From Takakia lepidozioides (lineage: Eukaryota > Plantae > Bryophyta): DNA of 64,000 nt. A program made the position numbers and the translations under genes. The DNA lies in assembly GCA_030704615.1 (NCBI GenBank), contig CM060734.1, positions 37,696,001 through 37,760,000 on the forward strand, given 5' to 3'. Each line of letters opens with the position of its first letter. Position 1 is the stretch's first letter. Positions 3,852-42,929 of the stretch are shown here, in pieces. Under the pieces are notes generated by a model. It searched no databases. It was not told the DNA's origin and saw only the letters and a list, made by a program, of their open reading frames with translations.

Positions 3852-3854
3852 TAA

Positions 3855-13610: not shown

Positions 13611-13889
13611 GTTGGTATCTCATTCAACTCTTACTAAACGTCAAGTGAACAGTGGAACTTGCTTTATGAGCCAAATAGAAACTGTTTTTTCTCCTGAAGT
13701 TTATACATAATGTTTCTTTATTGCTCATATTGTATATTAATAGACAAACAATTATATATATATATATATATATATTTAAAATGATCCATTTAAATTCATT
13801 TAAATGATTTAAAAAATACATATTCAGATATTTCTCCTTATTTCTGGACCAAACTTTAGTCCAGATTTACTTAAAACTGTGTGTTTCAA

Positions 13890-16739
13890 GCCGTCGTAAG
13901 AGAAATTTATGGATGTGCCAGACGGCATGGTTGTGTCGAGTAATACGAAGGTCATGAATAACGGGATGTGTGCATTGGCTAAGCAGGTGAAGCCAAGTGT
14001 TGCGGGTCGAGTGGGTGCTAGTACATAGCGGACAATTTGAGGAGGGGAAAATGTGGGGCTAGAAGGTGTGTTTCCGCTGGTGGCCCATGTACTGTGCATA
14101 TCTGAATTTAAGGGTCTGTTTTATTTGAGCGTCAGTTGCAAGATATGTGTGCCAGAAATGATTAGATAGTTTATGGTTCAGTACTGAGGATTGTGTCCAT
14201 TTCTGGATATGTAGTTTAGTGTGGCTAGCGGAAGTTGAGGCTTGTTTGTTAGTTTTTCGAGTAAGGGAGGTAAAGAGGTTCCGGATAAGACAAGGTTCCG
14301 GGGGGCCAGGAACGGGGTGGATGAACCAGAATGGATGGGCATGGGCAACATGGATGGGGTCTGGAGTGGGATCCACCGGGGGCCGGGTGGCCCCGCATTG
14401 GGCAAAGAGGTCAGCCATTTCGTTGCCAATGATACGGCCAGTGTGCGAGCGAACTTTGAAAGGATGGGTTGGTTCAGGGAGATATCAAGATGGACGATGG
14501 CGGCGATGAGGTTCTGATCAAGGTGGTGGTGGTGCGAGGAAGGGTGGGAGAGGTGGTTACGGATGAGAAATAGTGAGGTAAGGCTATTGGTAAAGATATA
14601 GTGGGGTGGGGGGGGAGTGAGGGGAGTTGGATGAGGGCATCATGGATGGCCATGAGTTCAGCACGAAGGATGTTGGCGGCCGGGAAGGCACAGGGCAAGC
14701 CCTTGGTTGGTAGCGGCATGGTAAATATCGTATCTAGCCCTAGGGCCCGCTATGAGGGATCCATCAGTGTAGTGCGAGTGGGCAGGTGGGTACTTAAGAG
14801 GTAGAACCTGTTGGGATACCGGGGGTTCACTATGAGCGGGCATAATAAATGAGATAGGGGGGTAGGGTAGCGCTTTAGACCATGTTTTACCTGGGTTTAT
14901 TCTGAGGTAAGGGCTGGGAGTAGCGGGTTGGGGCGGGGGGATAGGAAATGTAGTTGCTTTTATGCCATGCATGTCAGTTAGGAGGCGAGTAAGGCGGGAA
15001 GGAAAGTCGGTGGGTATGGTGGCAGCGGTGGGGGTGCGATGGACAAGCAATATTAGGGTTAGGGTGGGTTCCCCGTGTTTTAGGTATTTGGGAAGGGGCA
15101 GGGTGCGGGATTATTTGATCTGGTTTGGATCAATAGCAGGTAAAGGTGTGACCTCAGGGGGGAGGTGGAGGAGAGGGTGCCTAGAGGTTGGCAGTTGTTG
15201 GTGTGTTAGAAGAAAGATGGTGGCGGCGGAGGAGGGGGAGGATTGGGCCGCGAGGCGAGCCCATTGGAGAGCTTCATGCGCGAATAGCCTAGGGGGTGGA
15301 TGTGCAAGCCCGCGACCAGTCCATGTATGTTGTGTGGCAAAGCCGGAGGCTCCAAATATGCAATCCCGGGGGTGGGGGCTAGAGTATGACAAGAGCTCCA
15401 TCGGGCATGTGAGCGGGCTAGAGTAATAAGAGTGTGTGATTTGAAAAGAGGTTATAAGAAATGCTAGGATGTCAGGTGGGAGGGTGGTGTGAGAGTAGGC
15501 TTGGGTTAGCTTGTGGGAGATGCTCGGTTTTTTTGGGGGGGTATCACCTAAGTAGCGGTCAACAAGTCAGCAAACTTCTGTAGCAAAGTCTTGCCTAGGG
15601 GGCAGTAGCTGACTGGGTAACGGGTTGGAGTTTGAGAATCTGTGCCATAGCCAAGTGAGTCTGTCATTGGAGATGAGTCCATTGTAGCGGCCATAAAGAG
15701 CGTATAGACTGGACATACGTTTGCCAGAGCGTATTATGGGGGGGATGTGCATGATATCTTTGTCAGGGTTGCATTCCGTTATGCATACATGCACCTCAGG
15801 AGCAACTAGGGGGTTATGGACATATCGGGCGTCCAACAACTGGGTTTGGGAAGTATGTTGTTGGTGTATATGAGCTAGGTAGTTGGTAGTAGTTGTTTTA
15901 TGGAATGCGGTGAGAAGGTCAAGGTTATGGGCCGGGTCACAGTCGTCATGGGACCCAAAAAGGTCATCCTCTGTTTGCCAGGTGTTGTCTTCTGGTGGGT
16001 AGCTAGCCCATTTACATAGATAGAAAGTGTCAAGGCATGTGGCGTCAAACTCATCGGTAGAGGTTTGAGTTTTGATCCCTAAAATAGCTTCAATAATGGA
16101 GGCTTCCGGATTGTCATGATTGGTAGAGTGTGGGGTTAGGAGTGAAGGCGGGTGAGCTCTAGGGACAACGGGGTGTGTGGGGTAGCCGGGCCGGAAGAGG
16201 TGGGTGTGGTCAAGATTGACCCTGTCTCATGGATGGGGGCGGGGTGATAGAGTGGAGGGGGAGGGGGGGGGGGGGGGGGGTCGGTAGTTGTAGGATCTAT
16301 GTTAGTCATAGAAGCTTTGAGCTTATGGAGAATAGAAGAGGCTGGGGTTGTTCTATATTGAGGGTGGAGATCTTGTTTGTTATGGGGGAAGAGTGTGCAG
16401 GGTAGGTCACACTCAAGTGTGCAGGAAGTGGTCATATGGCAGAAAAGAGAACGAAGGTGGGATAGGTATCGGCAAGTTTTGACGGTAGCTCTGGAATATT
16501 TGAGGGTGAACTCGTTAGGAGTGAGTAGTCTGTAGCTAGAGGCTGTGGTGAGTTGGGCAAGTGTCATGATGTGCTGTACTTTAAAGTAAGCAAGGATGGG
16601 CAATTTTTGGCGGGGGTGTAGTTCCTTGAATGCAGAGAGGAGTGGACTGTCAAGCCAAGCTTGTTCCGGGGTGAGGTGGTGTTAGGATAGCCGGGGAGAT
16701 CGGTTTGTATGCTAATGTTCATTTGACGTAGGATGTATA
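13890..16739 (-). mobile_element. LINE 3' half: chromodomain, Dam-like methylase remnant, RNase H, CCHC knuckle + RHN motif; 3'-truncated and degenerate
   Basis: Chromodomain FYLCKWASYPPEDNTWQTEDDL (~15960-16030). Dam-like SSPLTCP...RDCIFGA...WTGRGLAHPP (~15290-15425). RNase H HYTDGS, ILRAELMAI and IIGNEMAD (14410-14780). CPLC..WLHLLSQC..RITRHNHAV (13920-14036). Confidence 0.85.
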
Positions 16740-17318
16740 CTCCAGTCTGTGAGGTCCACAAAACATCAAATAGATTGAAGGAACAATCCAGGCAGTCCAT
16801 GCAACCCCCATCTCCAACAACAGTTTGTAACCATGAATGTGAATTCCACGCACACATTGCAAACAGGACAACAAGGACACACAACCATCCCATTTCAAAT
16901 TTGGCCCAGAATTAAACCAAAAGAAAACTTCATATCAAGTGTCGCAGTCATCACAATCAGTGTCCACCTCCTGTGCTATGTCATCTACAAAGATTCTGGC
17001 CCCAACACCACGTGTTCTACGAAGGCCGTCGTAAGGTGGACTCGGAGTGCCATGAATGGACATGCTTGCTGCGAGTGCCTCCGCATAGACAAGTAGCACG
17101 CAAGACCGAGGAGGACTGCAAACAAGTCCAAATAGGTGTGATAGCCCTGGAGGGCAAGTGGAAGCACGCGGACTCCTGCGCATGTCCACAAAACCCCATT
17201 TTTAACACAATGATGCAATGCACAAGTCCAACAAAGAGGATGTCTCCCATGTGCACTTTGCCTGAAGAACAGCGACTCTCGATATTGAAACAACAATGAA
17301 AGCATGCACAGGTTGAAC

Positions 17319-17639
17319 TTACTCACAGGCAAAGTCGGAGTCCAGCTCCTTGTCAGAAGTCTCCTCTGTATCAGTATCAACGGGACGGGGCTTCGGAAGG
17401 ACTTGAGAAGTGTGTCCACCCAAACCCATCAGGAGGTTCTTGTAAATCTCAGCATCCCCTTCAATCCAAAAGACATGTCGCGCACTGGCCTTGCAAGCGT
17501 GGTAAGAAGCACCTGCAATGGAATAGAATGAATGAAGAAGACATTGAAGACACATTCGGAACGGTGGGAAGTGCTGAAAGTGCAAGCTCAATCAAACCTC
17601 ATGAAATGTGAATGTTGAAGAGACGAACCTGTGCCCATC
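17319..17639 (-). pseudogene. Inverted C-terminal part of the DNA methyltransferase gene (end of motif I onward)
   Basis: MGT|G-ASYHACKASARHVFWIEGDAEIYKNLL, with a phase-consistent GT-AG intron at 17628-17513. Confidence 0.7.
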
Positions 17640-20600
17640 TTGGTGTTAAATTTGGACTTCCAGGGCAGGTTTATGATGATGAAATAACCATTCAGTGGCA
17701 GCTCAAACAGTGTGCGCCAACGCACAATGTTTGAGCTGAACATGTAAGTGTTTTTTCAGATTGAAATTCGGCATTTAGGGCACGTTTCTGAGGATGAAAT
17801 AACCCCTCACTGGCAGCTCAAACAGTGTGCGCCAACGCACACTGTTTGAGCTGTACATGTCACTGCTTTTTTGGTGTTAAATTCGGACTAACAGGGCACG
17901 TTTATGATAATGAAATAACCATTCACTGGCAGCTCAAACAGTGTGCGTTGGCGCACACTGTTTGAGCTGAACATGTAAGTGTTTTTTCAGATTGAAATTC
18001 AGCATTTAGGGCACGTTTCTGAGGATGAAATAATCCCTCACTGGCAGCTCAAACAGTGTGCGCCAACGCACACTGTTTGAGCTGTACATGTCACTGCTTT
18101 TTTGGTGTTAAATTCGGACTTCCAGGGCAGGTTTATGATGATGAAATAACCATTCAGTGGCAGCTCAAACAGTGTGCGTTGGCGCACACTCTTTGAGCTA
18201 AACATATAAGTGTTTTTTCCGATTGAAATTTGGCATTTAGGGCACGTTTCTGAGGATGAAATAACCATTCAGTGGCAGCTCAAACAGTGTGCGCCAACGC
18301 ACACTGTTTCAGGTGAACATGTAAGTGTTTTTTCCGATTGAAATTCGGCATTTAGGGCACGTTTCTGAGGATGAAATAACCATTCAGTGGCAGCTCAAAC
18401 AGTGTGCGCCAACGCACACTGTTTGAGCTGTACATGTTACTGCTTTTTTGGTGTTAAAATCGGACTTCCAGGGCAGGTTTATGATGATGAAATAACCATT
18501 CAGTGGCAGCTCAAAGAGTGTGCACCAACACACACTGTTTGAGCTGATCATGTAAGTGTTTTTTCCGATTGAAATTCGGACTTCCAGGGCAGGTTTATGA
18601 TGATGAAATAACCATTCAGTGGCAGCTCAAACAATGTGCGTTGGCGCACACTGTTTGAGCTGAACATGTAAGTGTTTTTTCCGATTGAAATTCGGCATTT
18701 TGGGCACGTTTTTGAGGATGAAATAACCATTCAGTGGCAGCTCAAATAGTGTGCGCCAACGCACACTGTTTGAGCTGAACATGTAAGTGTTTTTTCCGAT
18801 TGAAATTCGGCATTTAGGGCACGGTTCTGAGGATGAAATAACAATTTAGTGGCAGCTCAAACAGTGTGCGCCAACGCACACTGTTTGAGCTGTACATGTC
18901 ACTGCTTTTTTGGTGTTAAATTTGGACTTCCACGGCAGGTTTATGATGATGAAATAACCATCTAGTGGCAGCTCAAACAGTGTGCGCCAACGCACACTGT
19001 TTGAGCTGTACATGTCACTGCTTTTTTGGTGTTAAATTCGGACTTCCAGGGCACGTTTATGATGATGAAATAACCATTCAGTGGCAGCTCAAACAGTGTG
19101 CGTTGGCGCACAATGTTTGAGCTGAACATGTAAGTGTTTTTTCAGATTGAAATTCGGCATTTAGGGCACGTTTCTGAGGATGAAATAACCCCTCACTGGC
19201 AGCTCAAACAGTGTGCGCCAACGCACACTGTTTGAGCTGTACATGTCACTGCTTTTTTGGTGTTAAATTCGGACTTCCAGGGCACGTTTATGATAATGAA
19301 ATAACCATTCAGTGGCAGCTCAAACAGTGTGCGTTGGCGCACACTGTTTGAGCTGAACATGTAAGTGTTTTTTCAGATTGAAATTCGGCATTTAGGGCAC
19401 GTTTCTGAGGATGAAATAATCCCTCACTGGCAGCTAAAACAGTGTGCGCCAACGCACACTGTTTCAGGTGAACATGTAAGTGTTTTTTCCGATTGAAATT
19501 CGGCATTTAGGGCTTGTTTCTGAGGATGAAATAACCATTCAGTGGCAGCTCAAACAGTGTGCGCCAACGCACACTGTTTGAGCTGTACATGTTACTGCTT
19601 TTTTGGTGTTAAAATCGGACTTCCAGGGCAGGTTTATGATGATGAAATAACCATTCAGTGGCAGCTCAAAGAGTGTGAGCCAACACAAACTGTTTGAGCT
19701 GATCATGTAAGTGTTTTTTCCGAATGAAATTCGGACTTCGAGGGCAGGTTTATAATGATGAAATAACCATTCAGTGGCAGCTCAAACAATGTGCGTTGGC
19801 GCACACTGTTTGAGCTGAACATGTAAGTGTTTTTTCCGATTGAAATTCGGCATTTTGGGCACGTTTTTGAGAATGAAATAACCATTCAGTGGCAGCTCAA
19901 ATAGTGTGCGCCAACGCACACTGTTTGAGGTGAACATGTAAGTGTTTTTTCCGATTGAAATTCGGCATTTAGGGCACGTTTCTGAGGATGAAATAACCAT
20001 TTAGTGGCAGCTCAAACAGTGTGCGCCAACGCACACTGTTTGAGCTGTACATGTCACTGCTTTTTTGGTGTTAAATTTTGACTTCCTGGGCAGGTTTATG
20101 ATGATGAAATAACCATTCAGTGGCAGCTCAAACAGTGTGCGCCAACGCACAATGTTTGAGCTGAACATGTAAGTGTTTTTTCATATTGAAATTCGGCATT
20201 TAGGGCACGTTTCTGAGGATGAAATAACCCCTCACCGGCAGTTTAAACAGTGTGCGCCAACGCACACTGTTTGAGCTGTACATGTCACTGCTTTTTTGGT
20301 GTTAAATTCGGACTTCCAGGGCAGGTTTATGATGATGAAATAACCATTCAGTGGCAGCTCTAACAGTGTGCGTTGGCGCACACTGTTTGAGTTGAACATG
20401 TTAGTGTTTTTTCAGATTGAAATTCGGCATTTAGGGCACGTTTCTGAGGATGAAATTATCCCTCACTGGCAGCTCAAACAGTGTGCGCCAACGCACACTG
20501 TTTGAGCTGTACATGTCACTGCTTTTTCGGTGTTAAATTTGGACTTCCAGGGCAGGTTAATGATGATGAAATAACCATCTAGTGGCAGCTCAAACAGTGT

Positions 20601-23600
20601 GCGCCAACGCACACTGTTTGAGCTGTACATGTCACTGCTTTTTTGGTGTTAAATTCGGACTTCCAGGGCATGTTTATGATGATGAAATAACCATTCAGTG
20701 GCAGCTCAAACAGTGTGCGTTGGCGCACAATGTTTGAGCTGAACATGTAAGAGTTTTTTCAGATTGAAATTCGGCATTTACGGCACGTTTCTGAGGATGA
20801 AATAACCCCTCACTGGCAGCTCAAACAGTGTGCGCCAACGCACACTGTTTGAGCTGTACATGTCACTACTTTTTTGGTGTTAAATTCGGACTTCCAGGGC
20901 ACGTTTATGATAATGAAATAACCATTCAGTGGCAGCTCAAACAGTGTCCGTTGGCGCACACTGTTTGAGCTGAACATGTAAGTGTTTTTTCAGATTGAAA
21001 TTCGGCATTTAGGGCACGTTTCTGAGGATGAAATAATCCCTCACTGGCAGCTCAAACAGTGTGCGCCAACGCACACTGTTTGAGCTGTACATGTCACTGC
21101 TTTTCTGGTGTTAAATTCGGACTTCCAGGGCAGGTTTATGATGATGAAATAACCATTCAGTGGCAGCTCAAACAGTGTGCGTTGGCGCACACTCTTTGAG
21201 CTAAACATATAAGTGTTTTTTCCGATTGAAATTTGGCATTTAGGGCACGTTTCTGAGGATGAAATAACCATTCAGTGGCAGCTCACACAGTGTGCGCCAA
21301 CGCACACTGTTTCAGGTGAACATGTAAGTGTTTTTTCCGATTGAAATTCGGTATTAAGGGCACGTTTCTGAGGATGAAATAACCATTCAGTGGCAGCTCA
21401 AACAGTGTGCGCCAACGCACACAATTTGAGCTCATGTTACTGCTTTTTTGGTGTTAAAATCGGACTTCCAGGGCAGGTTTATGATGATGAAATAACCATT
21501 CAGTGGCACCTCAAAGAGTGTGCGCCAACACACACTGTTTGAGCTGAACATGTAAGTGTTTTTTTCCGATTGAAATTCGGCATTAAGGGCATGTTTCTGA
21601 GGATGAAATAACCATTCAGTGGCAGCTCAAATAGTGTGCGCCAACGCACACTGTTTGAGCTGTACATGTCACTGCTTTTTTGGTGGTAAATTCGGACTTC
21701 CAGGGCAGGTTTATGATGATAAAATAACCATTCAGTGGCAGCTCAAACAGTGTGCATTGGCGCACACTGTTTGAGCTGAACATATAAGTGTTTTTTCCGA
21801 TTGAAATTCGGCATTTAGGGCACGTTTCTGAGGATGAAATAACCATTCAGTGGCAGCTCAAACAATGTGCGTTGGCCGACAATGTTTGAGCTGAACATGT
21901 AAGTGTTTTTTCAGATTGAAGTTCGGCATTTAGGGCACGTTTCTGAGGATGAAATAATCCCTCACTGGCAGCTCAAACAGTGTGCGCCAACACACACTGT
22001 TTGAGCTTTACATGTCACTGCTTTTTTGGTGTTAAATTCGGACTTACAGGGCACGTTTATGATAATGAAATAACCATTCAGTAGCAGCTCAAAGAGTGTG
22101 CGCCAACGCACACTGTTTGAGGTGAACATGTAAGTGTTTTTTCCGATTGAAATTCGGCATTTAGGGCACGTTTCTGAGGATGAAATAACCATTTAGTGGC
22201 AGCTCAAACAGTGTGCGCCAACGCACACTGTTTGAGCTATACATGTCACTGCTTTTTTGGTGTTAAATTTCGACTTCCAGGGCAGGTTTATGATGATGAA
22301 ATAACCATTCAGTGGCAGCTCAAACAGTGTGCGCCAACGCACACTGTTTGAGCTTTACATGTCACTGCTTTTTTGGTGTTAAATTCGGACTTCCAGGGCA
22401 GGTTTATGATGATGAAATAACCATTCAGTGGCAGCTCAAACCGTATGCGTTGGCGCACAATGTTTGAGCTGAACATGTAAGTGTTTTTTCAGATTGAAAT
22501 TCGGCATTTAGGGCACGTTTCTGAGGATGAAATAACCCCTCACTGGCAGCTCAAACAGTGTGCGCCAACGCACACTGTTTGAGCTGTACATGTCACTGCT
22601 TTTTTGGTGTTAAATTCGGACTTACAGGGCACGTTTATGATAATGAAATAACCATTCAGTGGCAGCTCAAACAGTGTGCGTTGGCGCACACTGTTTGAGC
22701 TGAACATGTAAGTGTTTTTTCAGATTGAAATTCGGCATTTAGGGCACGTTTCTGAGGATGAAATAATCCCTCACTGGCAGCTAAAACAGTGTGCGCCAAC
22801 GCACACTGTTTCATGTGACATGTAAGTGTTTTTTCCGATTGAAATTCGGCATTTAGGGCTCGTTTCTGAGGATGAAATAACCATTCAGTGGGAGCTCAAA
22901 TAGTGTGCGCCAACGCACACTGTTTGAGTTGTACATGTTACTGCTTTTTTGGTGTTAAAATCGTACTTCCAGGGCAGGTTTATGATGATGAAATAACCAT
23001 TCAGTGGCAGCTCAAAGAGTGTGCGCCAACACACACTGTTTGAGCTGATCATGTAAGTGTTTTTTCCGATTGAAATTCGGACTTCAAGGGAGGTTTATGA
23101 TGATGAAATAACCATTCAGTGGCAGCTCAACCAATGTGCGTTGGCGCACACTGTTTGAGCTGAACATGTAAGTGTTTTTTCCGATTGAAATTCGGCATTT
23201 TGGGCACGTTTTTGAGGATGAAATAACCATTCAGTGGCAGCTCAAATAGTGTGCGCCAACGCACACTGTTTGAGGTGAACATGTAAGTGTTTTTTCCGAT
23301 TGAAATTCGGCATTGAGGGCACGTTTCTGAGGATGAAATAACCATTTAGTGGCAGCTCAATCAGTGTGCGCCAACGCACAATGTTTGAGCTGTACATGTC
23401 ACTGCTTTTTTGGTGTTAAATTTGGACTTCCAGGGCAGGTTTATGATGATGAAATAACCATTCAGTGGCAGCTCAAACAGTGTGCGTTGGCGCACACTGT
23501 TTGAGCTGAACATGTAAGTGTTTTTTCATATTGAAATTCGGCATTTAGGGCACGTTTCTGAGGATGAAATAATCCCTCACTGGCAGGTCAAACAGTGTGC

Positions 23601-26600
23601 GCCAACGCACACTGTTTGAGCTGTACATGTCACTGCTTTTTTGGTGGTAAATTCGGACTTCCAGGGCAGGTTTATGATGATAAAATAACCATTCAGTGGC
23701 AGCTCAAACAGTGTGCATTGGCGCACACTGTTTGAGCTGAACATATAAGTGTTTTTTCCGATTGAAATTCGGCATTTAGGGCACGTTTCTGAGGATGAAA
23801 TAACCATTCAGTGGCAGCTCAAACAGTGTGCGTTGGCCGACAATGTTTCAGCTGGACATGTAAGTGTTTTTTCAGATTGAAATTCGGCATTTAGGGCACG
23901 TTTCTGAGGATGAAATTATCCCTCACTGGCAGGTCAAACAGTGTACGCCAACGCACACTGTTTGAGCTGTACATGTCACTGCTTTTTTGGTGTTAAATTC
24001 GGACTTACAGGGCACGTTTATGATAATGAAATAACCATTCAGTGGCAGCTCAAACAGTGTGCGTTGGCGCACACTGTTTGAGCTGAACATGTAAGTGTTT
24101 TTTCAGATTGAAATTCGGCATTTAGGGCACGTTTCTTAGGATGAAATAACCCCTCACCGGCAGTTCAAACAGTGTGCGCCAACGCACACTGTTTGAGCTG
24201 TACATGTCATTGCTTTTTTGGTGTTAAATTCGGACTTCCAGGGCACGTTTATGATGATGAAATAACCATTCAGTGGCAGCTCAAACAGTGTGCGTTGGCG
24301 CACAATCTTTGAGCTGAACATGTAAGTGTTTTTTCAGATTGAAATTCGGCATTTAGGGCACGTTTCTGAGGATGAAATAACCCCTCACTGGCAGCTCAAA
24401 CAGTGTGCGCCAACGCACACTGTTTGAGCTGTACATGTCACTGCTTTTTTGGTGTTAAATTCGGACTTACAGGGCACGTTTATGATAATGAAATAACCAT
24501 TCAGTGGCAGCTCAAACAGTGTGCGTTGGCGCACACTGTTTGAGCTGAACATGTAAGTGTTTTTTCAGATTGAAATTCGGCATTTAGGGCACGTTTCTTA
24601 GGATGAAATAACCCCTCACCGGCAGTTCAAACAGTGTGCGCCAACGCACACTGTTTGAGCTGTACATGTCACTGCTTTTTTGGTGTTAAATTCGGACTTC
24701 CAGGGCACGTTTCTGAGGATGAAATAACCATTCAGTGGCAGCTCAAACAGTGTGCGTTGGCGCACAATCATTGAGCTGAACATGTAAGTGTTTTTTCAGA
24801 TTGAAATTCGGCATTTAGGGCACGTTTCTGAGAATGAAATAACCCCTCACTGGCAGCTCAAATAGTGTGCGCCAACACACACTGTTTGAGCTGTACATGT
24901 CACTGCTTTTTTGGTGTTAAATTCGGACTTACAGGGCACGTTTATGATTATGAAATAACCATTTAGTGGCAGCTCAAACAGTGTGCGATGGCGCACAATC
25001 TTTGAGCTAAACATATACGTGTTTTTTCCGATTGAAATTTGGCATTTAGGGCACGTTTTTGAGGATGAAATAACCATTCAGTGGCAGCTCAAACAGTGTG
25101 CGCCAACGCACACTGTTTCAGGTGAACATGTAAGTGTTTTTTCCGATTGAAATTCGGCATTTAGGGCACGTTTCTGAGGATGAAATAACCATTCAGTGGC
25201 AGCTCAAACAGTGTACGCCAACGCACACTGTTTGAGCTGTACATGTTCTTGCTTTTTTGGTGTTAAAATCGGACTTCCAGGGCAGGTTTATGATGATGAA
25301 ATAACCATTCAGTGGCAGCTCAAAGAGTGTGCACCAACACACACTGTTTGAGCTGAACATGTAAGTGTTTTTTCAGATTGAAATTCGGCATTTAGGGCAC
25401 GTTTCTGAGGATGAAATAATCCCTCACTAGCAACCCAAACAGTGTGCGCCAACACACACTGTTTGAGCTGTACATGTCACTGCTTTTTTGGTGTTAAATA
25501 TGGACTTACAGGGCACGTTTATGATAATGAAATAACCATTCAGTGGCAGCTCAAACAGTGTGCGTTGGCGCACACTGCTTGAGCTGAACATGTAAGTGTT
25601 TTTTCAGATTGAAATTCGGCATTTAGGGCACGTTTCTGAGGATGAAATAATCCCTCACTAGCAGCTCAAACAGTGTGCGCCAACACACACTGTTTGAGCT
25701 GTACATGTCACTGCTTTTTTGGTGTTAAATTTGGACTTCCAGGGCAGGTTTATGATGATGAAATAACCATTCAGTGGCAGCTCAAATAGTGTGCGCCAAC
25801 ACACACTGTTTGAGCTGATCATGTAAGTGTTTTTTCCGATTGAAATTCGGACTTCCAGGGCAGGTTTATGATGATGAAATAACCATTCAGTGGCAGCTCA
25901 ACCAATGTGCGTTGGCGCACACTGTTTGAGCTGAACATGTAAGTGTTTTTTCCGATTGAAATTCGGCATTTTGGGCACGTTTTTGAGGATGAAATATCCA
26001 TTCAGTGGCAGCTCAAATAGTGTGCGCCAACGCACACTGTTTGAGGTGAACATGTAAGTGTTTTTTCCGATTGAAATTCGGCATTGAGGGCACGTTTCTG
26101 AGGATGAAATAACCATTTAGTGGCAGCTCAATCAGTGTGCGCCAACGCACACTGTTTGAGCTGTACATGTCACTGCTTTTTTGGTGTTAAATTTGGACTT
26201 CCAGGGCAGGTTTATGACGATGAAATAACCATTCGGTGGCAGCTCAAACAGTGTGCGTTGGCGCACACTGTTTGAGCTGAACATGTAAGGGTTTTTTCAT
26301 ATTGAAATTCGGCATTTCGGGCACGTTTTTGAGGGTGAAATAATCCCTCACTGGCAGGTCAAACAGTGTGCGCCAATGCACACTGTTTGAGCTGTACATG
26401 TCACTGCTTTTTTGGTGGTAAATTCGGACTTCCAGGGCAGGTTTATGATGATAAAATAACCATTCAGTGGCAGCTCAAACAGTGTGCATTGGCGCACACT
26501 GTTTGAGCTGAACATATAAGTGTTTTTTCGATTGAAATTCAGCATTTAGGGCACGTTTCTGAGGATGAAATAACCATTCAGTGGCAGCTCAAACAGTGTG

Positions 26601-29600
26601 CGTTGGCCGACAATGTTTGAGCTGAACATGTAAGTGTTTTTTCAGATTGAAATTCGGCATTTGGGGCACGTTTCTGAGGATGAAATAATCCCTCACTGGC
26701 AGCTCAAACAGTGTGCGCCAACACACACTGTTTGAGCTGTACATGTCACTGCTTTTTTGGTGTTAAATTCGGACTTACAGGGCACGTTTATGATAATGAA
26801 ATAACCATTCAGTGGCAGCTCAAAGAGTGTGCGCCAACGCACACTGTTTGAGGTGAACATGTAAGTGTTTTTTCCGATTGAAATTTGGCATTTAGGGCAC
26901 GTTTCTGAGGATGAAATAACCATTTAGTGGCAGCTCAAACAGTGTGCGTTGGCGCACACTGTTTGAGCTATACATGTCACTGCTTTTTTGGTGTTAAATT
27001 TCGACTTCCAGGGCAGGTTTATGATGATGAAATAACCATTCAATGGCAGCTCAAACAGTGTGCGCCAACGCACACTGTTTGAGCTTTACATGTCACTGCT
27101 TTTTTGGTGTTAAATTCGGACTTCCAGGGCAGGTTTATGATGATGAAATAACCATTCAGTGGCAGCTCAAACAGTGTGCGTTGGCGCACAATGTTTGAGC
27201 TGAACATGTAAGTGTTTTTTCAGATTGAAATTCGGCATTTAGGGCACGTTTCTGAGGATGAAATAATCCCTCACTAGCAGCTCAAACAGTGTGCGCCAAC
27301 ACACACTGTTTGAGCTGTACATGTCACTGCTTTTTTGGTGTTAAATTTGGACTTCCAGGGCAGGTTTATGATGATGAAATAACCATTCAGTGGCAGCTCA
27401 AATAGTGTGCGCCAACACACACTGTTTGAGCTGATCATGTAAGTGTTTTTTCCGATTGAAATTCGGACTTCCAGGGCAGGTTTATGATGATGAAATAACC
27501 ATTCAGTGGCAGCTCAACCAATGTGCGTTGGCGCACACTGTTTGAGCTGAACATGTAAGTGTTTTTTCCGATTGAAATTCGGCATTTTGGGCACGTTTTT
27601 GAGGATGAAATAACCATTCAGTGGCAGCTCAAATAGTGTGCGCCAACGCACACTGTTTGAGGTGAACATGTAAGTGTTTTTTCCGATTGAAATTCGGCAT
27701 TGAGGGCACGTTTCTGAGGATGAAATAACCATTTAGTGGCAGCTCAATCAGTGTGCGCCAACGCACACTGTTTGAGCTGTACATGTCACTGCTTTTTTGG
27801 TGTTAAATTTGGACTTCCAGGGCAGGTTTATGACGATGAAATAACCATTCGGTGGCAGCTCAAACAGTGTGCGTTGGCGCACACTGTTTGAGCTGAACAT
27901 GTAAGGGTTTTTTCATATTGAAATTCGGCATTTCGGGCACGTTTTTTAGGGTGAAATAATCCCTCACTGGCAGGTCAAACAGTTTGCGCCAATGCACACT
28001 GTTTGAGCTGTACATGTCACTGCTTTTTTGGTGGTAAATTCGGACTTCCAGGGCAGGTTTATGATGATAAAATAACCATTCAGTGGCAGCTCAAACAGTG
28101 TGCATTGGCGCACACTGTTTGAGCTGAACATATAAGTGTTTTTTCCGATTGAAATTCAGCATTTAGGGCACGTTTCTGAGGATGAAATAACCATTCAGTG
28201 GCAGCTCAAACAGTGTGCGTTGGCCGACAATGTTTGAGCTGAACATGTAAGTGTTTTTTTCAGATTGAAATTCGGCATTTGGGGCACGTTTCTGAGGATG
28301 AAATAATCCCTCACTGGCAGCTCAAACAGTGTGCGCCAACACACACTGTTTGAGCTGTACATGTCACTGCTTTTTTGGTGTTAAATTCGGACTTACAGGG
28401 CACGTTTATGATAATGAATAACCATTCAGTGGCAGCTCAAAGAGTGTGCGCCAACGCACACTGTTTGAGGTGAACATGTAAGTGTTTTTTTCCGATTGAA
28501 ATTTGGCATTTAGGGCACGTTTCTGAGGATGAAATAACCATTTAGTGGCAGCTCAAACAGTGTGCGTTGGCGCACACTGTTTGAGCTATACATGTCACTG
28601 CTTTTTTTGGTGTTAAATTTCGACTTCCAGGGCAGGTTTATGATGATGAAATAACCATTCAATGGCAGCTCAAACAGTGTGCGCCAACGCACACTGTTTG
28701 AGCTTTACATGTCACTGCTTTTTTGGTGTTAAATTCGGACTTCCAGGGCAGGTTTATGATGATGAAATAACCATTCAGTGGCAGCTCAAACATTGTGCGT
28801 TGGCGCACAATGTTTGAGCTGAACATGTAAGTGTTTTTTCAGATTGAAATTCGGCATTTAGGGCACGTTTCTGAGGATGAAATAACCCCTCACTGGCAGC
28901 TCAAACAGTGTGCGCCAACGCACACTGTTTGAGCTGTACATGTCACTGCTTTTTTGGTGTTAAATTCGGACTTACAGGGCACGTTTATGATAATGAAATA
29001 ACCATTCAGTGGCAGCTCAAACAGTGTGCGTTGGCGCACACTGTTTGAGCTGAACATGTAAGTGTTTTTTCAGATTGAAATTCGGCATTTAGGGCACGTT
29101 TCTGAGGATGAAATAATCCCTCACTGGCTGCTAAAACAGTGTGCGCCAACGCACACTGTTTCAGGTGAACATGTAAGTGGTTTTTCCGATTGAAATTCGG
29201 CATTTAGGGCTCGTTTCTGAGGATGAAATAACCATTCAGTGGCAGCTCAAACAGTGTGCGCCAACGCACACTGTTTGAGCTGTACATGTTACTGCTCTTT
29301 TGTTGTTAAAATCGGACTTCCAGGGCAGGTTTATGATGATGAAATAACCATTTAGTTGCAGCTCAAAGAGTGTGCGCCAACACACACTGTTTGAGCTGAT
29401 CATGTAAGTGTTTTTTCCGATTGAAATTCGGACTTCCAGGGCAGGTTTATGATGATGAAATAACCATTCAGTGGCAGCTCAAACAATGTGCGTTGGCGCA
29501 CACTGTTTGAGCTGAACATGTAAGTGTTTTTTCCGATTGAAATTCGGCATTTTGGGCACGTTTTTGAGAATGAAATAACCATTCAGTGGCAGCTCAAATA

Positions 29601-32600
29601 GTGTGCGCCAACGCACACTGTTTGAGGTGAACATGTAAGTGTTTTTTCCGATTGAAATTCGGCATTTAGGGCACGTTTCTGAGGATGAAATAACCATTTA
29701 GTGGCAGCTCAAAGAGTGTGCGCCAACGCACACTGTTTGTGCTGTACATGTCACTGCTTTTTTGGTGTTAAATTTTGACTTCGTGGGCAGGTTTATGATG
29801 ATGAAATAACCATTCAGTGGCAGCTCAAACAGTGTGCGCCAACGCACAATGTTTGAGCTGAACATGTAAGTGTTTTTTCATATTGAAATTCGGCATTTAG
29901 GGCACGTTTCTTAGGATGAAATAACCCCTCACCGGCAGTTCAAACAGTGTGCGCCAACGCACACTGTTTGAGCTGTACATGTCACTGCTTTTTTGGTGTT
30001 AAATTCGGACTTCCAGGGCACGTTTATGATGATGAAATAACCATTCAGTGGCAGCTCAAACAGTGTGCGTTGGCGCACAATGTTTGAGCTGAACATGTAA
30101 GTGTTTTTTCAGATTGAAATTCGGCATTTAGGGCACGTTTCTGAGGATGAAATAACCCCTCACTGGCAGCTCAAACAGTGTGCGTTGGCGCACACTGTTT
30201 GAGCTGTACATGTCACTGCTTTTTTGGTGTTAAATTCGGACTTACAGGGCACGTTTATGATAATGAAATAACCATTCAGTGGCAGCTCAAACAGTGTGCG
30301 TTGGCGCACAATGTTTGAGCTGAACATGTAAGTGTTTTTATAAATTGAAATTCGGCATTTAGGGCACGTTTCTGAGGATGAAATAATCCCTCACTGGCAG
30401 CTCAAACAGTGTGCGCCAACGCACACTGTTTGAGCTGTACATGTCACTGCTTTTTTGGTGTTAAATTCGGACTTCCAGGGCAGGTTTATGATGATGAAAT
30501 AACCATTCAGTGGCAGGTCAAACAGTGTGCGTTGGCGCACACTCTTTGAGCTAAACATATAAGTGTTTTTTCCGATTGAAATTTGGCATTTAGGGCACGT
30601 TTTTGAGGATGAAATAACCATTCAGTGGCAGCTCAAACAGTGTGCGCCAACGCACACTGTTTGAGGTGAACATCTAAGTGTTTTTTCCGATTGAAATTCG
30701 GCATTTAGGGCACGTTTTTGAGGATGAAATAACCATTTAGTGGCAGCTCAAACAGTGTGCGCCAACGCACACTTTTTGAGCTATACATGTCACTGCTTTT
30801 TTGGTGTTAAATTTCGACTTCCAGGGCAGGTTTATGATGATGAATACCATTCAATGGCAGCTCAAACAGTGTGCGCCAACGCACACTGTTTGAGCTTTAC
30901 ATGTCACTGCTTTTTTGGTGTTAAATTCGGACTTCAGGGCAGGTTGATGATGAAATAATAACCATTCAGTGGCAGCTCAAACAGTGTGCGTTGGCGCACA
31001 CTGCTTGAGCTGAACATGTAAGTGTTTTTTCAGATTGAAATTCTGCATTTAGGGCACGTTTCTGAGGATGAAATAATCCCTCACTAGCAGCTCAAACAGT
31101 GTGCGCCAACACACACTGTTTGAGCTTTACATGTCACTGTGCTTTTTTTGTGTTAAATTTGGACTTCCAGGGCAGGTTTATGATGATGAAATAACCATTC
31201 AGTGGCAGCTCAAAAAGTGTGCACCAACGCACACTGTTTGAGCTGAACATGTAAGTGTTTTTTCAGATTGAAATTCGGCATTTAGGGCACGTTTCTGAGG
31301 ATGAAATAACCCCTCACTGGCAGCTCAAACAGTGTGCGCCAACGCACACTGTTTGAGCTGTACATGTAACTGCTTTTTTTGGTTTTAATTTCGGACTTCC
31401 AGGGCACGTTTATGATAATGAAAAATAACCATTCAGTGGCAGCTCAAACAGTGTGCGTTGGCGCACAATGTTTAGCTGAACATGTAGTGTTTTTTCAGAT
31501 TGAAATTCGGTATTTAGGGCACGCTTCTGAGGATGAAATAACCCCTCACTGGCAGCTCAAACAGTGTGCGCCAACACACACTGTTTGAGCTGTACATGTC
31601 ACTACTTTTTTGGTGTTAAGTTCGGACTTACAGGGCACGTTTATGATAATGAATAACCATTCAGTGGCAGCTCAAACAGTGTGCGTTGGCGCACACTGTT
31701 TGAGCTGAACATGTAAGTGTTTTTTCAGATTGAAATTCGGCATTTAGGGCACGTTTCTGAGGATGAAATAATCCCTCACTGGCAGCTCAAACAGTGTGCG
31801 CCAACGCACACTGTTTGAGCTGTACATGTCACTGTTTTTTTGGTGTGTAATTTCGGACTTCCAGGGCAGGTTTATGATGATGAAATAACCATATCAGTGG
31901 CAGGTCAAACATGTGTGTTGGCGCACACTCTTTGAGCTAACATATAAGTGTTTTTTCCGATTGAAATTTGGCATTTTACGGCACGTTTCTGAGGATGAAA
32001 TAACCATTCAGTGGCCTCAAACAGTGTGCGCCAACGCACACTGTTTCAGGTGACATGTATTGTTTTTTCCGATTGAAATTCGGGCATTTAAGGGCACGTT
32101 TCTGAGGATGAAATAACCATTCAGTGGCAGCTCAAACAGTGTGCGCCAACGCACACTGTTTGAGCTGTACATGTTACTCTACTGCTTTTTTTGGTGTTAA
32201 AATCGGACTTCCAGGGCAGATTTATGATGATGAAATAACACATTCAGTGGCAGCTCAAAGAGTGTGCGCCAACACACACTGTTTGAGCTGAACATGTAAG
32301 TGTTTTTTCCGATTGAAATTCGGACTTCCAGGGCAGGTTTATGATGATGAAATAACCATTTAGTGGCCTCAAACAATGTGCGTTGGCGCACACTGTTTGA
32401 GCTGAACATGTAAGTGTTTTTTTTTTCCGATTGAAATTCGGCATTTTGGGCACGTTGTGAGGATGAAATAACCATTCAGTGGCAGCTCAAATAGTGTCGC
32501 CAATGCACACTCCTTTGAGCTGTACATGTCACTTCTCCACTGCTTTTTTGGTGTTAAATTCGGACTTCCAGGGCACGTTTATATAATGAAATAACCATTC

Positions 32601-33516
32601 AGTGGCAAGCTCAAACAGTGTGCGTTGGCGCACAAGTTTGAGCTGAACATGTAAGTGTTTTTTTTTCAGATTGAAATTCGGCATTTAGGGCACGTTTCTG
32701 AGATGACATAATCCCTCACTGGCAGCTCAAACAGTGTGCGCCAATTGCACACTCTTGAGATGTTACATGTCCTTGCTTTTTGGTGTTAATTCGGAGTTCC
32801 ATCCAGGGCACGTTTATGATATGAATAACCTTCATGGCAAGCTCAACCAGTGTGCGTTGGCGCACACTTTTGAGCTGAACATTTAAGTGTTTTTTCAGAT
32901 TGAAATTCGGCATTGAGGGCACTTTCTGAGGATGAAATAATCCCATCACACTGGCAGGAGGTCCAAACAGTGTGCGCCAACGTCACACTGTTTGATGATG
33001 AAATAACCATTAAGTGGCAGCTCAAACAGTGTGCGGTTGGCGCACACTGTTTGAGCTGAACATATAAGTGTTTTTCGATTGAAATTCGGCATTTAGGGCA
33101 CGTTTCTGAGGATGAAATAACCATTCAGTGGCAGCTCAAACAGTGGTGCGCCAACGCACACTGTTTGAGGTGACATAGTGTTTTTTTTCCGATTGAAATT
33201 CGGCATTTAGGGCCGTTTCTGAGGATGAAAATACCATTCAGTGGCAGCTCAAACAGTGTGCACCAACGCACACTGTTTGAGGTGAACATGTAAGTGTTTT
33301 TTTCCGATTGAAATTGGGCATTTAGGGCACGTTTCTGAGGATGAATAACCATTTAGTTGCAGCTCAAACAGTTTTGCGCCAACGCACACTGTTTGAGCTG
33401 TACATGTCACTGCTTTTTTGATGTTAAATTTGGACTTCCAGGGCAGGTTTATGATGATGAAATAACCATTCAGTGGCAGCTCAAACAGTGTGCGCCAACG
33501 CACACTGTTCGAGCTG
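17640..33516. repeat. Satellite array of ~137 monomers, 115 bp (type A) and 116 bp (type B), each with a 40-bp palindrome; higher-order repeats present
   Basis: Type A reads gagctgaacatgtaagtgttttttc(c/a)gattgaaattcggcatttagggcacgtttctgaggatgaaataa.... Type B reads gagctgtacatgtcactgcttttttggtgttaaattcggacttccagggcaggtttatgatgatgaaataa.... Both share cagctcaaacagtgtgcg-NNNN-cgcacactgtttgagctg. Confidence 0.98.
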
Positions 33517-33519
33517 CAA

Positions 33520-36500
33520 AGTGTGGCAGATGAGGTCCCTTCGGGTCAGGAGAGGAGATAATTGTTGATGTGGACGATGAGTTCTATGAAAGCAAAGCCG
33601 CTGAGATGCTGGGGGGTCAGAAGGTAAACTCTCAGCTTGTGGTGCAAAGTATGCTTGCCCCGGGTGGGAGGTTGAAGATTCCCCGTGTGTAGGTTGGTTT
33701 CCATGCCCGTCGTTCGTACACCCCTCGTCAAGGACATTCTCAAGCTGGAGGCCAAGTTTGTGCATGGGTATTTGGATGGATCCGCAGTCTTTTACGTTTC
33801 TACTAGGGATTCCAAAGGTAATGAGCTCCTCGTGGATCAGTCAATCGTGGACTCCTGGGACCCCATTTGGAGACAGCTGAAAGATGTTGCACGTTTGGGA
33901 TGGGACCACCGCTTGCTTGCATGGATGGCTGTCATTGGGAGGCTGCACTCACATGAGGAAGAGTGGCATTACTCTGTTCGATCGTGGTGCGGATTGTGAC
34001 GGGAACATGTGGGTCTTCTGACGGCAATGAAATGTGAACAGGTTGGTTTCCTCATTCTACATGTTCACTTGTGGTTCCATTCTTCTTTGATTGAAGACCT
34101 TGAATTTCATTCTGACTTACAGATATCATTCTGCAGAGGAACGGAGACATCGCATGTCAAAACGAGTTTGGTTCACACACTGTATAGGATACAAAGGATA
34201 GGCAGATGCCCTTTACCAACTTCAAGACCATCCTTTCAGCAGAGTGTACAAGAAGTGCGAAATCTCCAAGACATCGGAAACGTGGTACTCGTTGACCCGA
34301 GGCTTTCATGGAGTACATGTACACGGTGAGATACATCTTCCTTCATCTGGTCTTCCATATTCCACATGGTTTATTTCTGTTTGTTTCCCTTGACCTTGTG
34401 CTGATGCAACTCTCTTGCATTCCCTTGCAGCAAGACATTGCAGATGTAGGGGAGCGTGGCAAACTGGAATACTACAGCTCTACCTCTGAGGAGAGAAGGA
34501 CAGCAAGGGGGTTGAGAGTCGCATCCAGAAAGAGATGACCGCTACAAGAAGGACTATAATGAGTGCTTTCGTGAAGCAGTTGAGAATTGCCGACCCATCA
34601 TTCGGACCGCAGTTTCTCCTGGAGATAAAAACCATTATAACAAGCCAGGCAAGCCAGAAATGGCCCAGGAGAAGTTGCACAGGCTGTCTACCGCCGTTGT
34701 GTCTCCAGAACAAAAGGTGAAGTGGCTGCAGATATGGAACTCCGATCCCACAGTTAGGGATACCCACATGTTCCCAAGGCCGGAGAAAGAGAAGAAGACC
34801 CAGCGTGTCATTCTTGTCAGTGACAATGTGCTGGACACCTGGCTTCACAAGGCCACTTACTGGAGCCAGGTGTGATGTCCTTCCCTGTGTCACTGTCTTT
34901 TCTCTTTTCCTGTCCTTATCTTTCTATTGCCTCTTACATTTGCTGTGATTGCTTTTGGTTTCATTCTTGCATTTGTATTGTTTTGCAGTTGGAAGAAAGG
35001 GCCAGATCGGTTCTGCATACTCACTGGCTGACTATGGCATCAGTATGATAGCACCGAAGGTGTCCTTCAAAGCATACATGAGGAAATGGAGAGCCACAGT
35101 GTGGCACTCTTGTTTCTTTAGAGAGTTCAGCAAGGAGGGTGGCATCAGTCGAACAAATGAGCTGGACCAGCAAGAAAAAGGAGAGGAAGCCTGGAAACGA
35201 TGCCTTTACAGGTGCACACTCTTGCACTACTTATTTGTGCTGTGGTTGCAATGTGTTGTGTGGCATACTGTTTAAGGGGGTCTTCCTGGTGTGATGGAAA
35301 AGTTGCCACACAATATTTCCATTGTAAAATGAGGCTGTCTCTGTTGCTGCAGGTACATAAAGTTTGTTCTCCTGGAAGAGAATTGCCTGGACAAACATCC
35401 AGATTTCGTGGACCTGTGGCTTGTCCCTGCTGGCAACCAGACCATGTTCACTACTGGGATCTTGCATGACTGGGGCCAAGACCATCTTTCTTCTTGTGGT
35501 TGGTATTTGGATTGCCCTCCTTCTGAGACCCCAGCTCCAGAGGTGTCTTTGAGGAGAGAGAATGACCGTATTGCAGCCACTGCCGCAGCAACCGACCTCG
35601 ACATTCATGAACGAAATTTGAGGACTCTTGCAGAGAAGGAGCCTCCCGCTCACGATACCCCAGGTAGAGGAAGAAAGGCAAAGGGAAAAGATGTTGCTGG
35701 TGTTGTGGGGAAGGGAAGGGGTAGAGGGAAGGTGGCACAAGGGCAGGGAAGTGTTGCAGATATTGGGCCCTATGGAGCATGTCCAGCAGACTCCACCGCA
35801 TGGTAGGGGATCCGGGAGAAAAAACAAGGGGGTGGTTGATCCCAAGGACCCGTACCATGCAGTGGAACATCCCACGAGGGTCATTCGCCCAACCAGGTTG
35901 GAGATGGCCAACGTCGGGTTCCTTGCCATGATGGAGTCGAAGAATCTGATTACAAGGGCGAGCCATCACCAGTGTGGGACAGGATTGTGCAGTTCCTCAG
36001 CACGGTGCGTGTTCTCTTTGGGTTCTGTGGCTTCTGTTGTTTTTGTCTGCTGTGGGCATGGATCGTTTCTAAACTTGTGAGAATTCCATTGTATTTTTGT
36101 TTGCAGGCTAAAATGACCAAATCCTGGGTGAACGGGAAGGAAAAGCCATATGCAGCCGAACTCATCATCTTGGACATCCCTGATGGGTTGGCAGTCCCGG
36201 ATATCCCTCCATCGGTGCTTGTCCGGGTTGGAATGCTTTTGATGAGCGCTACTGGCGGTGGGTTTTCTCCTTTTGCACCTTCTTCCTGTCCGATGCAGGT
36301 GTTTTGGTGCTCATCCAGTCCATCGACAGTCGGTGTCGCCGTGCACTTTCCAGCTATTTGAAAGCCTCGGGCATGAGAGTCGTGAAGACATGGAATTGTG
36401 TGAACAGCATGTACCTTACGAAGGGGATCGCCCGGGAGAGATGGTGAGTTTGCCTTCTTCTTCCTCTTCTTGGTTGTTCTCCGATGGGGTTGTATAGGTC

Positions 36501-36836
36501 GCTCGAACTCATATGTAGGGGCCCGATTTTTTTTTGCTTCTTAGTTCCTTGTGGATGTCATGTTCGCAGACTCGTCTGTTTGAAGCTGTTTGTCTCGTCC
36601 GGGTGCATCCACAAACGACTCCGGCCGGCATTACCGAGTTTGCCATCACTCATGGGGCCAAGTTCATAGATGACAGGACAGATCCCCCCACGGATGACAT
36701 GCATCACAACTACGTCGACAGCAACGTGTGCTTGCGAAGGGAGAATGGGTTCCTTGGAGAGGGGCGAGGGAGAGGAGTCCAGCTTTCATTCAAACGATTG
36801 TGGAGTGCTGCACCTACACAGACGCCAGAGTTCTGG
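33520..36836 (+). pseudogene. Multi-exon ParB-like domain + beta-class N4C/N6A DNA methyltransferase gene (N-terminal part, ends in motif I)
   Basis: ParB-like CRLVSMPVVRTPL..GY..GSAVFYVS..VWDG[N]HRLLAW (~33690-33930, frameshifted). Motif IV-like AELIILDIPDGL (~36155-36190). WRGARERSPAFIQTIVECCTYTDARVL (36755-36835) leads into motif I. Several GT-AG introns. Confidence 0.65.
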
Positions 36837-39800: not shown

Positions 39801-41312
39801 GTGATGGGTTGAAAGTGAGTTTGGAAGGCGACGATATTGCGTTGGGGTATGGGGGAGAGGAGGCGTGGTTGGGGAGGGGGTATGTGTACATCAGGGATGG
39901 GTCGAAAGGGAATAAGCGATGGAGGGAGGGAGACAGATATATGGTAGTGGTCAGAGTTGCATAGACTATCTATGTGTATGCGGCTCATAAGATATAGGGG
40001 GATATCCTCATTAGTTTTGAGGTAAAATCCATCTATGAGGCTTAGTGAGGAGTAATTGAGTCCTCCTTGTCTAGAATAGTGATGGTCCGTGGGGATATAT
40101 TTGAGAAGGTGTCGTGACGTGAACCGAGCCCAGTCACGATCAACTTGCGTAGGGGGTTTATGCGTGCCATTGAAGGTATGGCCAAGTAGAGCAATGTCCC
40201 TGTTGAAGTCTCCTGCTAATATGATGTGGTATTGTAGATGATCGGGGTTGGTCATTGTGTTGGATATGGTGTTTAGTATATCGGGTATAAGTGGTAGGTC
40301 CTCCGCATGGGATGAAGACAATGGGGCATAGTGCTGACGGATGTAGTTGGACGATTTGGAGGTGAGATCAAAGATGAATGGGTAGAGTTATTTTAGTGGT
40401 GGTGCTTGGTGAGTGATGTGAACATAGGATGCCGAGTGCAACACCGCCCCTAGTGGGTTTGTATGGTGCGGAGCGCCTGAGGAGACATTGTGGGGCGGTG
40501 AGGGGGTTACTGTATAAGAGGCAGTAGTCCGAAAGGAGTTTCTTGATGTATGAGCTATTAGTGTTGCTAGTGTGCAGCTTGGTTTCTTGTAGTAGTATGA
40601 TATGGGGGGAGGTGGAGTCAGTAAGGAGGTGGATGAGGCTCTGGATACTAGTAGCGAGAGAACTGACGTTCCAGGAGGTGATTATGAATGAATTGGTGTT
40701 ACTTTCGGATATAGAAATAGGATCAGTTGTGTTGGGTTGAAAGGGTGCGGGTGGTGGTGGGGAGGGGGGTGTAGTGCTGGTGGTGGCGGGGAGAACCCAA
40801 GGAGGGGGGTAATGGCTTTTAGTGTGGCAGCGAGGGTGTCTTGGGAGATGAAGGGAAATTTGTTAGTGGTTTCCAGAAGGTATGGGTCGGGAATGGTTAT
40901 GGTGGCTAGGTGGTCACCGAGAATCTTATGCACGGCGCCTGGTTGGGTTTGCAACAGATTTAGAGATGAGTGAAGAGTTAGATAGGTAGTGAGGTGGGGC
41001 CAAGTAATTATGGGGGAGCAACGGTAGGCTTTGTATTTTGTGGAGAAAGGTACGTATTTGGGAGATTGAGTGAGAGTGAAGATAACCATTACATGTTTCA
41101 GGCAGCAGGGAGATGATGATTATAACGGAGATTAAAAGAAGATGGGTCTTGGGGAAGGTTTTGAATTTTTGCAGGGCTTTGGAAAGTGCTGGGTAGCGAC
41201 TGGGGGGGAGTCCAAAATTTGTGACGTATTGCGTGGGCGTATGGTCGGGAGGTGGGACGTGCGGGAAGAATGGTGTGAAGTGGTCAGAGATATGGCGGTA
41301 GTTGTGCCTGAG
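36834..41312 (-). mobile_element. LINE 5' half: AP endonuclease and reverse transcriptase, degenerate
   Basis: APE motifs ITSWNV, IILLQETK, ILAGDFN, IDGF and SDHY (39940-40685). RT motifs KAPGPD, NYRPIAL, QEGFR, YIDFKNAFGS, RGTI*GDTLSP, YAND and YTYLGI (38030-38970). Confidence 0.92.
37214..37922. mobile_element. Solo LTR (709 bp) nested in the LINE
   Basis: TGTCGC...GCGACA termini and a perfect 5-bp TSD GTTTG (37209-37213, 37923-37927). Removing it restores the LINE frame SPVSIRPKLSFVQ. Confidence 0.92.
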
Positions 41313-42773: not shown

Positions 42774-42929
42774 AAGGATGTTTTCTTAGCAAGATGCAAG
42801 TGTCTTGCTTCATTCATTGATCTATGTAGCTACTCAGACCATCCACCATTTCCTGAGAGTCTTGACCATCATGTACTGTCAGAGAGGGCTGGAGGATCAG
42901 ATGAGGGTTTGACAGATTCAACATCATGG

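Follow-up and report, generated by a model that had tools for sequence, protein, structure and literature searches.

Introduction

Break filler, extrachromosomal DNA captured by end joining in plants and retroelements inserted independently of an endonuclease share three features, namely the lack of a target-site duplication (TSD), a patchwork of donor pieces and microhomologies of 0–3 nt at the junctions. Fork stalling and template switching (FoSTeS) and microhomology-mediated break-induced replication (MMBIR) join inverted and direct donor segments by short microhomology, and the target is usually duplicated or deleted. A locus that can be compared with these processes was analysed in the bryophyte Takakia lepidozioides, in a 64,000-nt stretch of DNA referred to here as the window (assembly GCA_030704615.1, contig CM060734.1, positions 37,696,001–37,760,000 of the forward strand). 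In the window, a long interspersed nuclear element (LINE) is interrupted by a 20-kb insert that holds a palindrome-bearing array and two oppositely oriented pieces of one gene, predicted to encode a ParB–methyltransferase.

Two further described systems are close to this locus. L1 twin priming yields two inverted fragments of one RNA, which are bounded by TSDs and bear poly(A) (PMC2837659). In red algae, a Plavaka DNA transposon carries a ParB-like accessory gene, PAG3, directly beside a tandem inverted-repeat array (bioRxiv 10.1101/2025.02.11.637652).

The window resembles L1 twin priming in that it contains two pieces of one template, a direct 3' piece and an inverted 5' piece whose internal break lies towards the target, with few bases lost at the inversion junction. 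It differs in that the insert lacks a TSD and poly(A), that introns and a transposon repeat array are present, and that the template is not the LINE itself. Like captured filler and endonuclease-independent insertions, the insert is TSD-less, holds donor pieces in either orientation and shows microhomology in the 0–3 nt range, whereas it is much larger than typical filler, with 20 kb in total and at least 4.2 kb when the array is left out, and the target lost nothing. The combination of inverted and direct segments of one donor is shared with FoSTeS/MMBIR, in which a run-off at the broken donor end would explain two junctions at one site; in contrast to these processes, the target in the window is neither duplicated nor deleted. 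As in PAG3, a ParB-like gene adjoins an array, which in the window ends 12 nt before the candidate start codon. In contrast to the PAG3 case, the partner domain in the window is beta-class N4/N6 methyltransferase-like and its motif IV region is altered, the superfamily would be Mutator-like rather than Plavaka/CACTA, and the window copy is a broken pseudogene.

Results

A LINE that reads straight across the insert

The insert occupies 16740–36833 (20,094 bp) and lies within one LINE copy, the halves of which are on the minus strand. To the right of the insert, the 5' half (36834–41100, with an undefined 5' end) gave Pfam matches to EEP (Exo_endo_phos_2, an AP-type endonuclease) and RVT_1, continues into a thumb region, and aligns up to the last residue before the join with five related loci, of which L013–L015 come from JGI contigs and the other two, L012 and L016, each from an ENA assembly of its own. 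To the left, the decayed 3' half (13890–16739) comprises a linker, a chromodomain (Pfam Chromo, E = 2.6e-8), a PCIF1-like domain (PCIF1_WW, E = 1.2e-4), an RNase H-like stretch past the latter that was read in translation and carries no Pfam score, and a C-terminal Cys/His region. This half was delimited by the Pfam matches, by colinearity with L013 and L016 and by a GC skew of +0.455. The skew is strongly positive in both flanks (0.43–0.46), and the insert has no such skew. With an AP endonuclease, a reverse transcriptase (RT) and an RNase H on one strand, plus a chromodomain and a PCIF1-like domain, the element has the predicted domain set of a Dualen-type LINE.

The RT piece matched 398 fragments with identities of up to 70%, and the RTs of the five compared loci were 60–68% identical to that of the window, with colinearity extending over the RT, the thumb, the linker, the chromodomain and the PCIF1-like region. 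When the insert is removed, the window reads SPTART then IYILRQ across the join, where L012 reads SPTTRN then LFLIKK, L013 reads SLITRT then LYLFKT, and L016 reads SPITRS then LFLLKK. In these three relatives, similarity runs on past the join in both directions, with no residue missing or doubled. In-frame rejoining alone is a weak argument, as long open frames occur in every phase of the C-rich sense strand; the relatives, which read straight across the join, uphold the rejoining of the LINE proposed in the initial annotation. The alignments confirmed a true insertion in a Dualen-type LINE whose target was neither duplicated nor lost. Since the residue count of the LINE must be kept, the TGG at 36834–36836 belongs to the LINE, in which it corresponds to the codon ACC of '..ART'.

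Several searches with the LINE were negative. A word-based protein search with the chromodomain piece gave no match, and no locus could be confirmed when relatives were sought with the thumb piece. No repeat of at least 11 nt was found as a TSD around the whole LINE, the ends of which are undefined, so that a one-insertion origin of the two halves is not shown by this search.

A smaller nested insert of about 640 nt (37225–37860) lies between the RT and the thumb; its base skew is opposite, and it lacks recognisable coding sequence. The LINE on each side of it aligns to one 15-residue stretch of the relatives, IKQKIKMVDTVIRAG; because both flanks match the same stretch, the nested insert is bordered by a diverged duplication of about 40 nt, in contrast to the TSD-less 20-kb insert. 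Directly upstream of the LINE endonuclease region and on the same strand, 41313–46018 consists of tandem-like repeats of about 230–260 bp with 80–90% identity, and scattered copies of these occur at 5354–5452 and 7642–8035. They could be 5' monomers of the LINE or a separate satellite.

Two gene pieces on opposite strands

Between the LINE flanks, the insert consists of three blocks, namely the array and, on either side of it, the two parts of the gene, with the 3' part to the left (minus strand) and the 5' part to the right (plus strand). The gene was searched as stop-free pieces, and contigs were fetched for several relatives. None of ten such pieces had a Pfam domain match, and homologues were therefore used instead. 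A word-based protein search with the ParB piece gave no match; phmmer against a library of 1.84 billion proteins found 195 relatives of the ParB-like piece. The N-terminal part (33517–36833, plus strand), an unspliced pseudogene, was delineated by phmmer and by alignments to P0001–P0170 and L002–L011, and the C-terminal part (16740–17639, minus strand) by tblastn against L004, L006, L007 and L008. In all four of these loci, the coding blocks are ordered N-part then C-part.

Around the break, the sequence of the relatives is '..PWRG.RE....F.Q.L.EA....GD-h-h-h-D-x-x-[AT]-S-[TC]-G' followed by 'G/A...AC...RH......E', and three of the four have an intron between these two stretches. The motif-I context 'GD.V.D..[AT]S.G' is conserved across the relatives. 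In the window, the N-part runs as '..PWRGARERSPAFIQTIVECCTYTDARVL' to 36835, ending in 'TDARVL', and the C-part runs from 17638 downwards on the other strand as 'MGTG|ASYHACKASARH', with an intron between 'MGTG' and 'ASYHACKASARHVFWIEGD'. Measured against the four relatives, the window lacks exactly three residues (D-x-x) immediately ahead of motif I, a loss of 7–11 nt depending on the owner of G17639 and of TGG 36834–36836. At the position of this TGG, which the gene would read as 'CTG G..', the relatives carry L, M, V or A and then D (GAY). The two methylase pieces are thus neighbouring parts of one exon.

The C-part consists of the end of the motif-I exon (17639–17629), the retained intron, an exon that begins with 'ASYHACKASARHVFWIEGD' (about 17526–17330), and a last exon with the stop codon (17201–16935); about 195 nt of the C-part lie beyond this last exon. 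The last exon and its stop are conserved with L007 (11516–11683 of that locus), so that the C-part contains the whole 3' end of the gene. In position and phase, the intron that follows motif I ('TG-G') matches those of L004, L006 and L007. A spacer that is lacking in the continuous open reading frame (ORF) of L002 is present in the window, and further non-coding spacers of the N-part are kept. The retention of introns and spacers shows that the template was unspliced.

The inserted copy has frameshifts near 33683, 33895 (in the DGNHR box) and 36725, and its ParB domain has a gap of about 17 residues. The copy is thus a pseudogene. No in-frame stop occurs in the 589 aligned codons of the N- and C-parts together. 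By comparison, the RT/thumb region of the LINE carries three in-frame stops, at 38401, 38209 and 37015. The difference fits an insertion into an older LINE and weakly suggests that this LINE had died before the insertion took place.

Beta-class N4/N6 methyltransferases have a motif IV, (D/S)PP(Y/F), followed by a C-terminal motif I, FxGxG, and ParB proteins have a GxxR/DGNHR box. At 35390–35420, the window reads 'DLWLVPAGNQ' where beta-class methyltransferases have the catalytic (D/S)PP(Y/F), and the relatives are likewise non-canonical. This shared deviation suggests that the domain is not an active methylase but a binding module.

Palindrome array and transposon relatives

The array (17640–33516, plus strand) was defined by Tandem Repeats Finder, monomer anchoring and the inverted repeat I1. 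It spans 15.9 kb and contains about 133 monomers of uniform orientation, with a 115-bp unit and a 231-bp A/B dimer, and every unit includes a palindrome with 18-bp arms. The monomers are about 80–85% alike, and no large higher-order repeat of high identity is present. The 4-nt centre of the palindrome is CCAA or TTGG depending on the monomer, with unchanged arms (17928, 33016 and other monomers). Growth of the array in situ from one unit, with a special edge variant in the first and last monomers, was considered and rejected, as this variant is common inside the array. The satellite palindrome had no match in the JGI metagenomes. The 33516/17 junction is probably natural, given that 33517 is the end of the last palindrome and that a candidate ATG follows at 33529, 12 nt past the array end.

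The surroundings of the gene were further characterised in L003 and L004, which come from one ENA assembly and share a 96%-identical block. In L004, the block is 11.1 kb long (3488–14596), and L003 has an extra 2-kb insert within the gene (12069–14107). The block ends in inverted repeats of about 37 nt and is flanked by direct repeats of 9–10 bp, with a different repeat at each of the two loci. Upstream of its ParB–methyltransferase gene lie three 62-nt palindromes, so that the order is array, N-part, C-part. The gene and the palindrome array thus appear to be the internal part of a family of DNA transposons with terminal inverted repeats (TIRs), in which this colinear order would be the natural one. 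A colinear donor of satellite, N-part and C-part had been postulated in the initial annotation and matches the order in these related elements; the origin of the insert from a transposon interior is new relative to that annotation. L003 and L004 each have an additional long palindrome with 75-nt arms near 4220–4370.

Large ORFs that neighbour the gene in the relatives, and are candidate transposases, gave no match in Pfam. For a neighbouring 427-aa ORF in L005, a language-model atlas gave leads to GCM/MULE/SWIM, all scoring below 0.9, the cut-off above which a match counts as more than a lead. The TIR/TSD unit in a relative and these MULE leads below the cut-off hint that the donor may have been a Mutator-like transposon. 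L005 also contains two tandem 211-residue ORFs (7018–7653 and 9385–10020), 2.4 kb apart and equal in size to the ParB-like query ORF, of which that at 9385–10020 was shown to be ParB-like. They lie downstream of two large minus-strand ORFs of 427 and 435 aa that lack a Pfam match.

Junctions and insert ends

Alignment to the relatives measured the bases lost on both sides, with none in the LINE and 7–11 nt in the gene, in agreement with the proposal that the methylase had been cut at motif I with few bases lost. The TGG at 36834–36836 was suspected to be shared with the LINE; the relatives assign it to the LINE, and its 3-nt overlap with the gene forms a microhomology at the right junction. 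Several other elements of the initial annotation were borne out. The order of target 5' half, inverted array and N-part, direct C-part and target 3' half is real, and the retention of the motif-I intron, whose position and phase are conserved, and of the other spacers is confirmed. No TSD was visible at the insert junctions, where the LINE relatives show an intact target without duplication, and no poly(A) or A/T run was found at 16740–16800, downstream of the stop codon or at 36833. The stated absence of TIRs stood insofar as none at the insert ends was convincing, with a weak, scoring-dependent end similarity remaining. The hallmarks of Mutator-like transposition, a TSD of 9–11 bp and TIRs at the insert ends, were thus lacking.

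The end similarity involves the terminal 75–130 nt or so of the insert, in which 16740–16870 (R2, minus strand) and 36700–36833 (R1) are weakly similar in inverted orientation. In gene orientation, the two form a direct repeat, in which R1 immediately precedes the break and R2 forms the tail of the C-part. The shared blocks are 'TTGGAGA.GGG', 'TTC.TTCAA.C.ATT' and 'CCT.CACAGAC', each similar stretch stops 5–13 nt from its junction, and R1 and R2 are reciprocal best matches. The significance of the local alignment depended on the scoring scheme, with z = 5.7 (1/-1/-2/-1), 4.0 (5/-4/-10/-0.5), 1.6 (blastn defaults) and 0.6 (1/-2/-3/-1), and p ranging from <0.001 to 0.36. Identity was about 66% in the gapped local alignment and about 52% codon by codon, so that about a third or more of the positions differ, and no similarity was detected at the protein level.

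Three interpretations of the ends were rejected. A counterpart of R2 was not seen in L004, L006, L007 or L008, arguing against a conserved feature downstream of the gene. Nor can R2 be a copy of R1 that dates from the event, since the two are too diverged for this when the 589 gene codons contain no stop. Mimicry of the LINE's own 3' end, as expected for recognition by its RT, was not supported (p = 0.4–0.9).

Discussion

The insert may well have arisen by a single DNA-level break repair that captured pieces of one broken transposon copy, a reading in which our confidence is about evenly balanced. A double-strand break would have occurred inside an already dead Dualen-type LINE, the ends of which would have been protected. 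The donor would have been one copy of a Mutator-like transposon, which supplied its palindrome array and the adjoining ParB–methyltransferase accessory gene and which also had a break, in the motif-I exon. The fragment with the array and the N-part would have been attached through its broken end to one LINE end. Of the C-part, the broken end would have been joined to the array at its far end, and the 3' end to the remaining LINE end. We infer that all junctions stem from one event, and that the pieces were joined either by end joining of fragments or by microhomology-primed copying, that is, template switching of the synthesis-dependent strand annealing (SDSA) or MMBIR type with run-off at the broken end of the donor. 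Both are compatible with the sequence, which does not separate them; the template-switching repair on DNA considered in the initial annotation thus stands, as does plain end-joining capture. Repair in one event is supported by the exact target, the splitting of the gene with only 7–11 nt lost, the retained introns, the lack of TSD and poly(A), the TGG overlap and the transposon origin.

Several points weigh against repair in one event. Microhomology is documented for the right junction, whereas at 16739/40 and 17639/40 it would be conjectural, and the natural status of 33516/17 is putative. The captured piece, at 19 kb, is large for filler DNA, and perfect preservation of the target with three novel junctions is unusual in error-prone repair. 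Moreover, the model does not account for the break in the motif-I exon, and a history of two steps retains some probability of its own.

The explanation favoured in the initial annotation was that both broken ends had primed on one single-stranded template. In this model, the 3' ends of the LINE would anneal to a sense template in the order array, N-part, C-part, one at the 3' end of the gene and the other at motif I; both would copy towards the 5' end of the template, and resolution would yield the inversion. The layout of the twin-priming class, the outward break of the inverted 5' part, the small loss at the inversion junction and the 3-nt overlap at the internal priming site agree with it. 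However, the layout is one of four distinguishable, equally likely ligations of two donor pieces into a break, and with a prior of 1 in 4 under random ligation it carries little weight, so that the geometry alone does not show priming, and the explanation is only partly supported. TSD and poly(A), the hallmarks of twin priming (PMC2837659), are both absent, the motif-I intron and other spacers are kept, and the insert ends are unlike the LINE's own 3' end. What remains of the twin-priming layout are the two inverted fragments and the small internal deletion, whereas TSD, poly(A) and a spliced RNA template are all lacking. We therefore regard two-ended priming on one single-stranded template, whether DNA or RNA, as unlikely. 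In the RNA version, which would be true twin priming, the LINE RT would have copied an unspliced read-through transcript. That RNA would have to span the 15.9-kb array, as the monomer divergence of 15–20% is too great for growth after the event, and twin priming without TSD or poly(A), by an RT or another polymerase working from both break ends on an unspliced, array-containing transposon transcript, is highly improbable in our judgement. If true, it would be twin priming on a non-LINE template in a non-seed plant.

A colinear insertion of array, N-part and C-part, followed by a later inversion of the array and N-part with a breakpoint in motif I, would build on the natural colinearity of array and gene in the relatives, and inversions are common. 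Nevertheless, the second breakpoint would have to coincide exactly with the older LINE/array junction, the LINE being intact to the codon, and no inverted repeat able to mediate the inversion was found, making such a history quite unlikely. A single inversion or a reciprocal exchange between LINE and transposon was dismissed, as neither can give LINE halves of the same orientation with the tail of the C-part, rather than its break, against the LINE. Aberrant transposition, in which the element's own transposase would have used a cryptic end in the motif-I exon and a second look-alike end, draws on the end similarity, significant under lenient gap scoring and with R1 and R2 as mutual best matches. 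The similarity is lost under stricter scoring (p = 0.10–0.36) and at the protein level, and a mismatch of about 34% or more is too diverged to date from the event, given no stops in 589 codons; in addition, the 9–10 bp TSD made by the related element in L003 and L004 is lacking, and the LINE target is intact. Transposition of this kind is accordingly very unlikely. A false join in the satellite that unites two unrelated loci deserves mention because a 15.9-kb array with monomers 80–85% similar is difficult to assemble. Yet each of the three novel junctions is within unique sequence or borders on it, and the breakpoints are complementary, to the codon in the LINE and within three residues in the gene, which is not expected of a misjoin. 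We consider such an artefact extremely improbable; only the length of the array could be an assembly error.

Capture of DNA during break repair, the reading preferred here, makes the locus a clean but ordinary case of repair with foreign DNA, an event of a known kind and no new system. Its value would be that of a well-resolved repair fossil, in which the target and the donor gene can both be checked to the codon against relatives. An L1-like twin-priming layout can arise without the hallmarks of retrotransposition, which cautions against classifying inverted insertions by geometry alone. Furthermore, the interior of a ParB–methyltransferase transposon, together with its palindrome array, can move in the absence of its transposase and its TIRs, and can then endure as a satellite of 16 kb.

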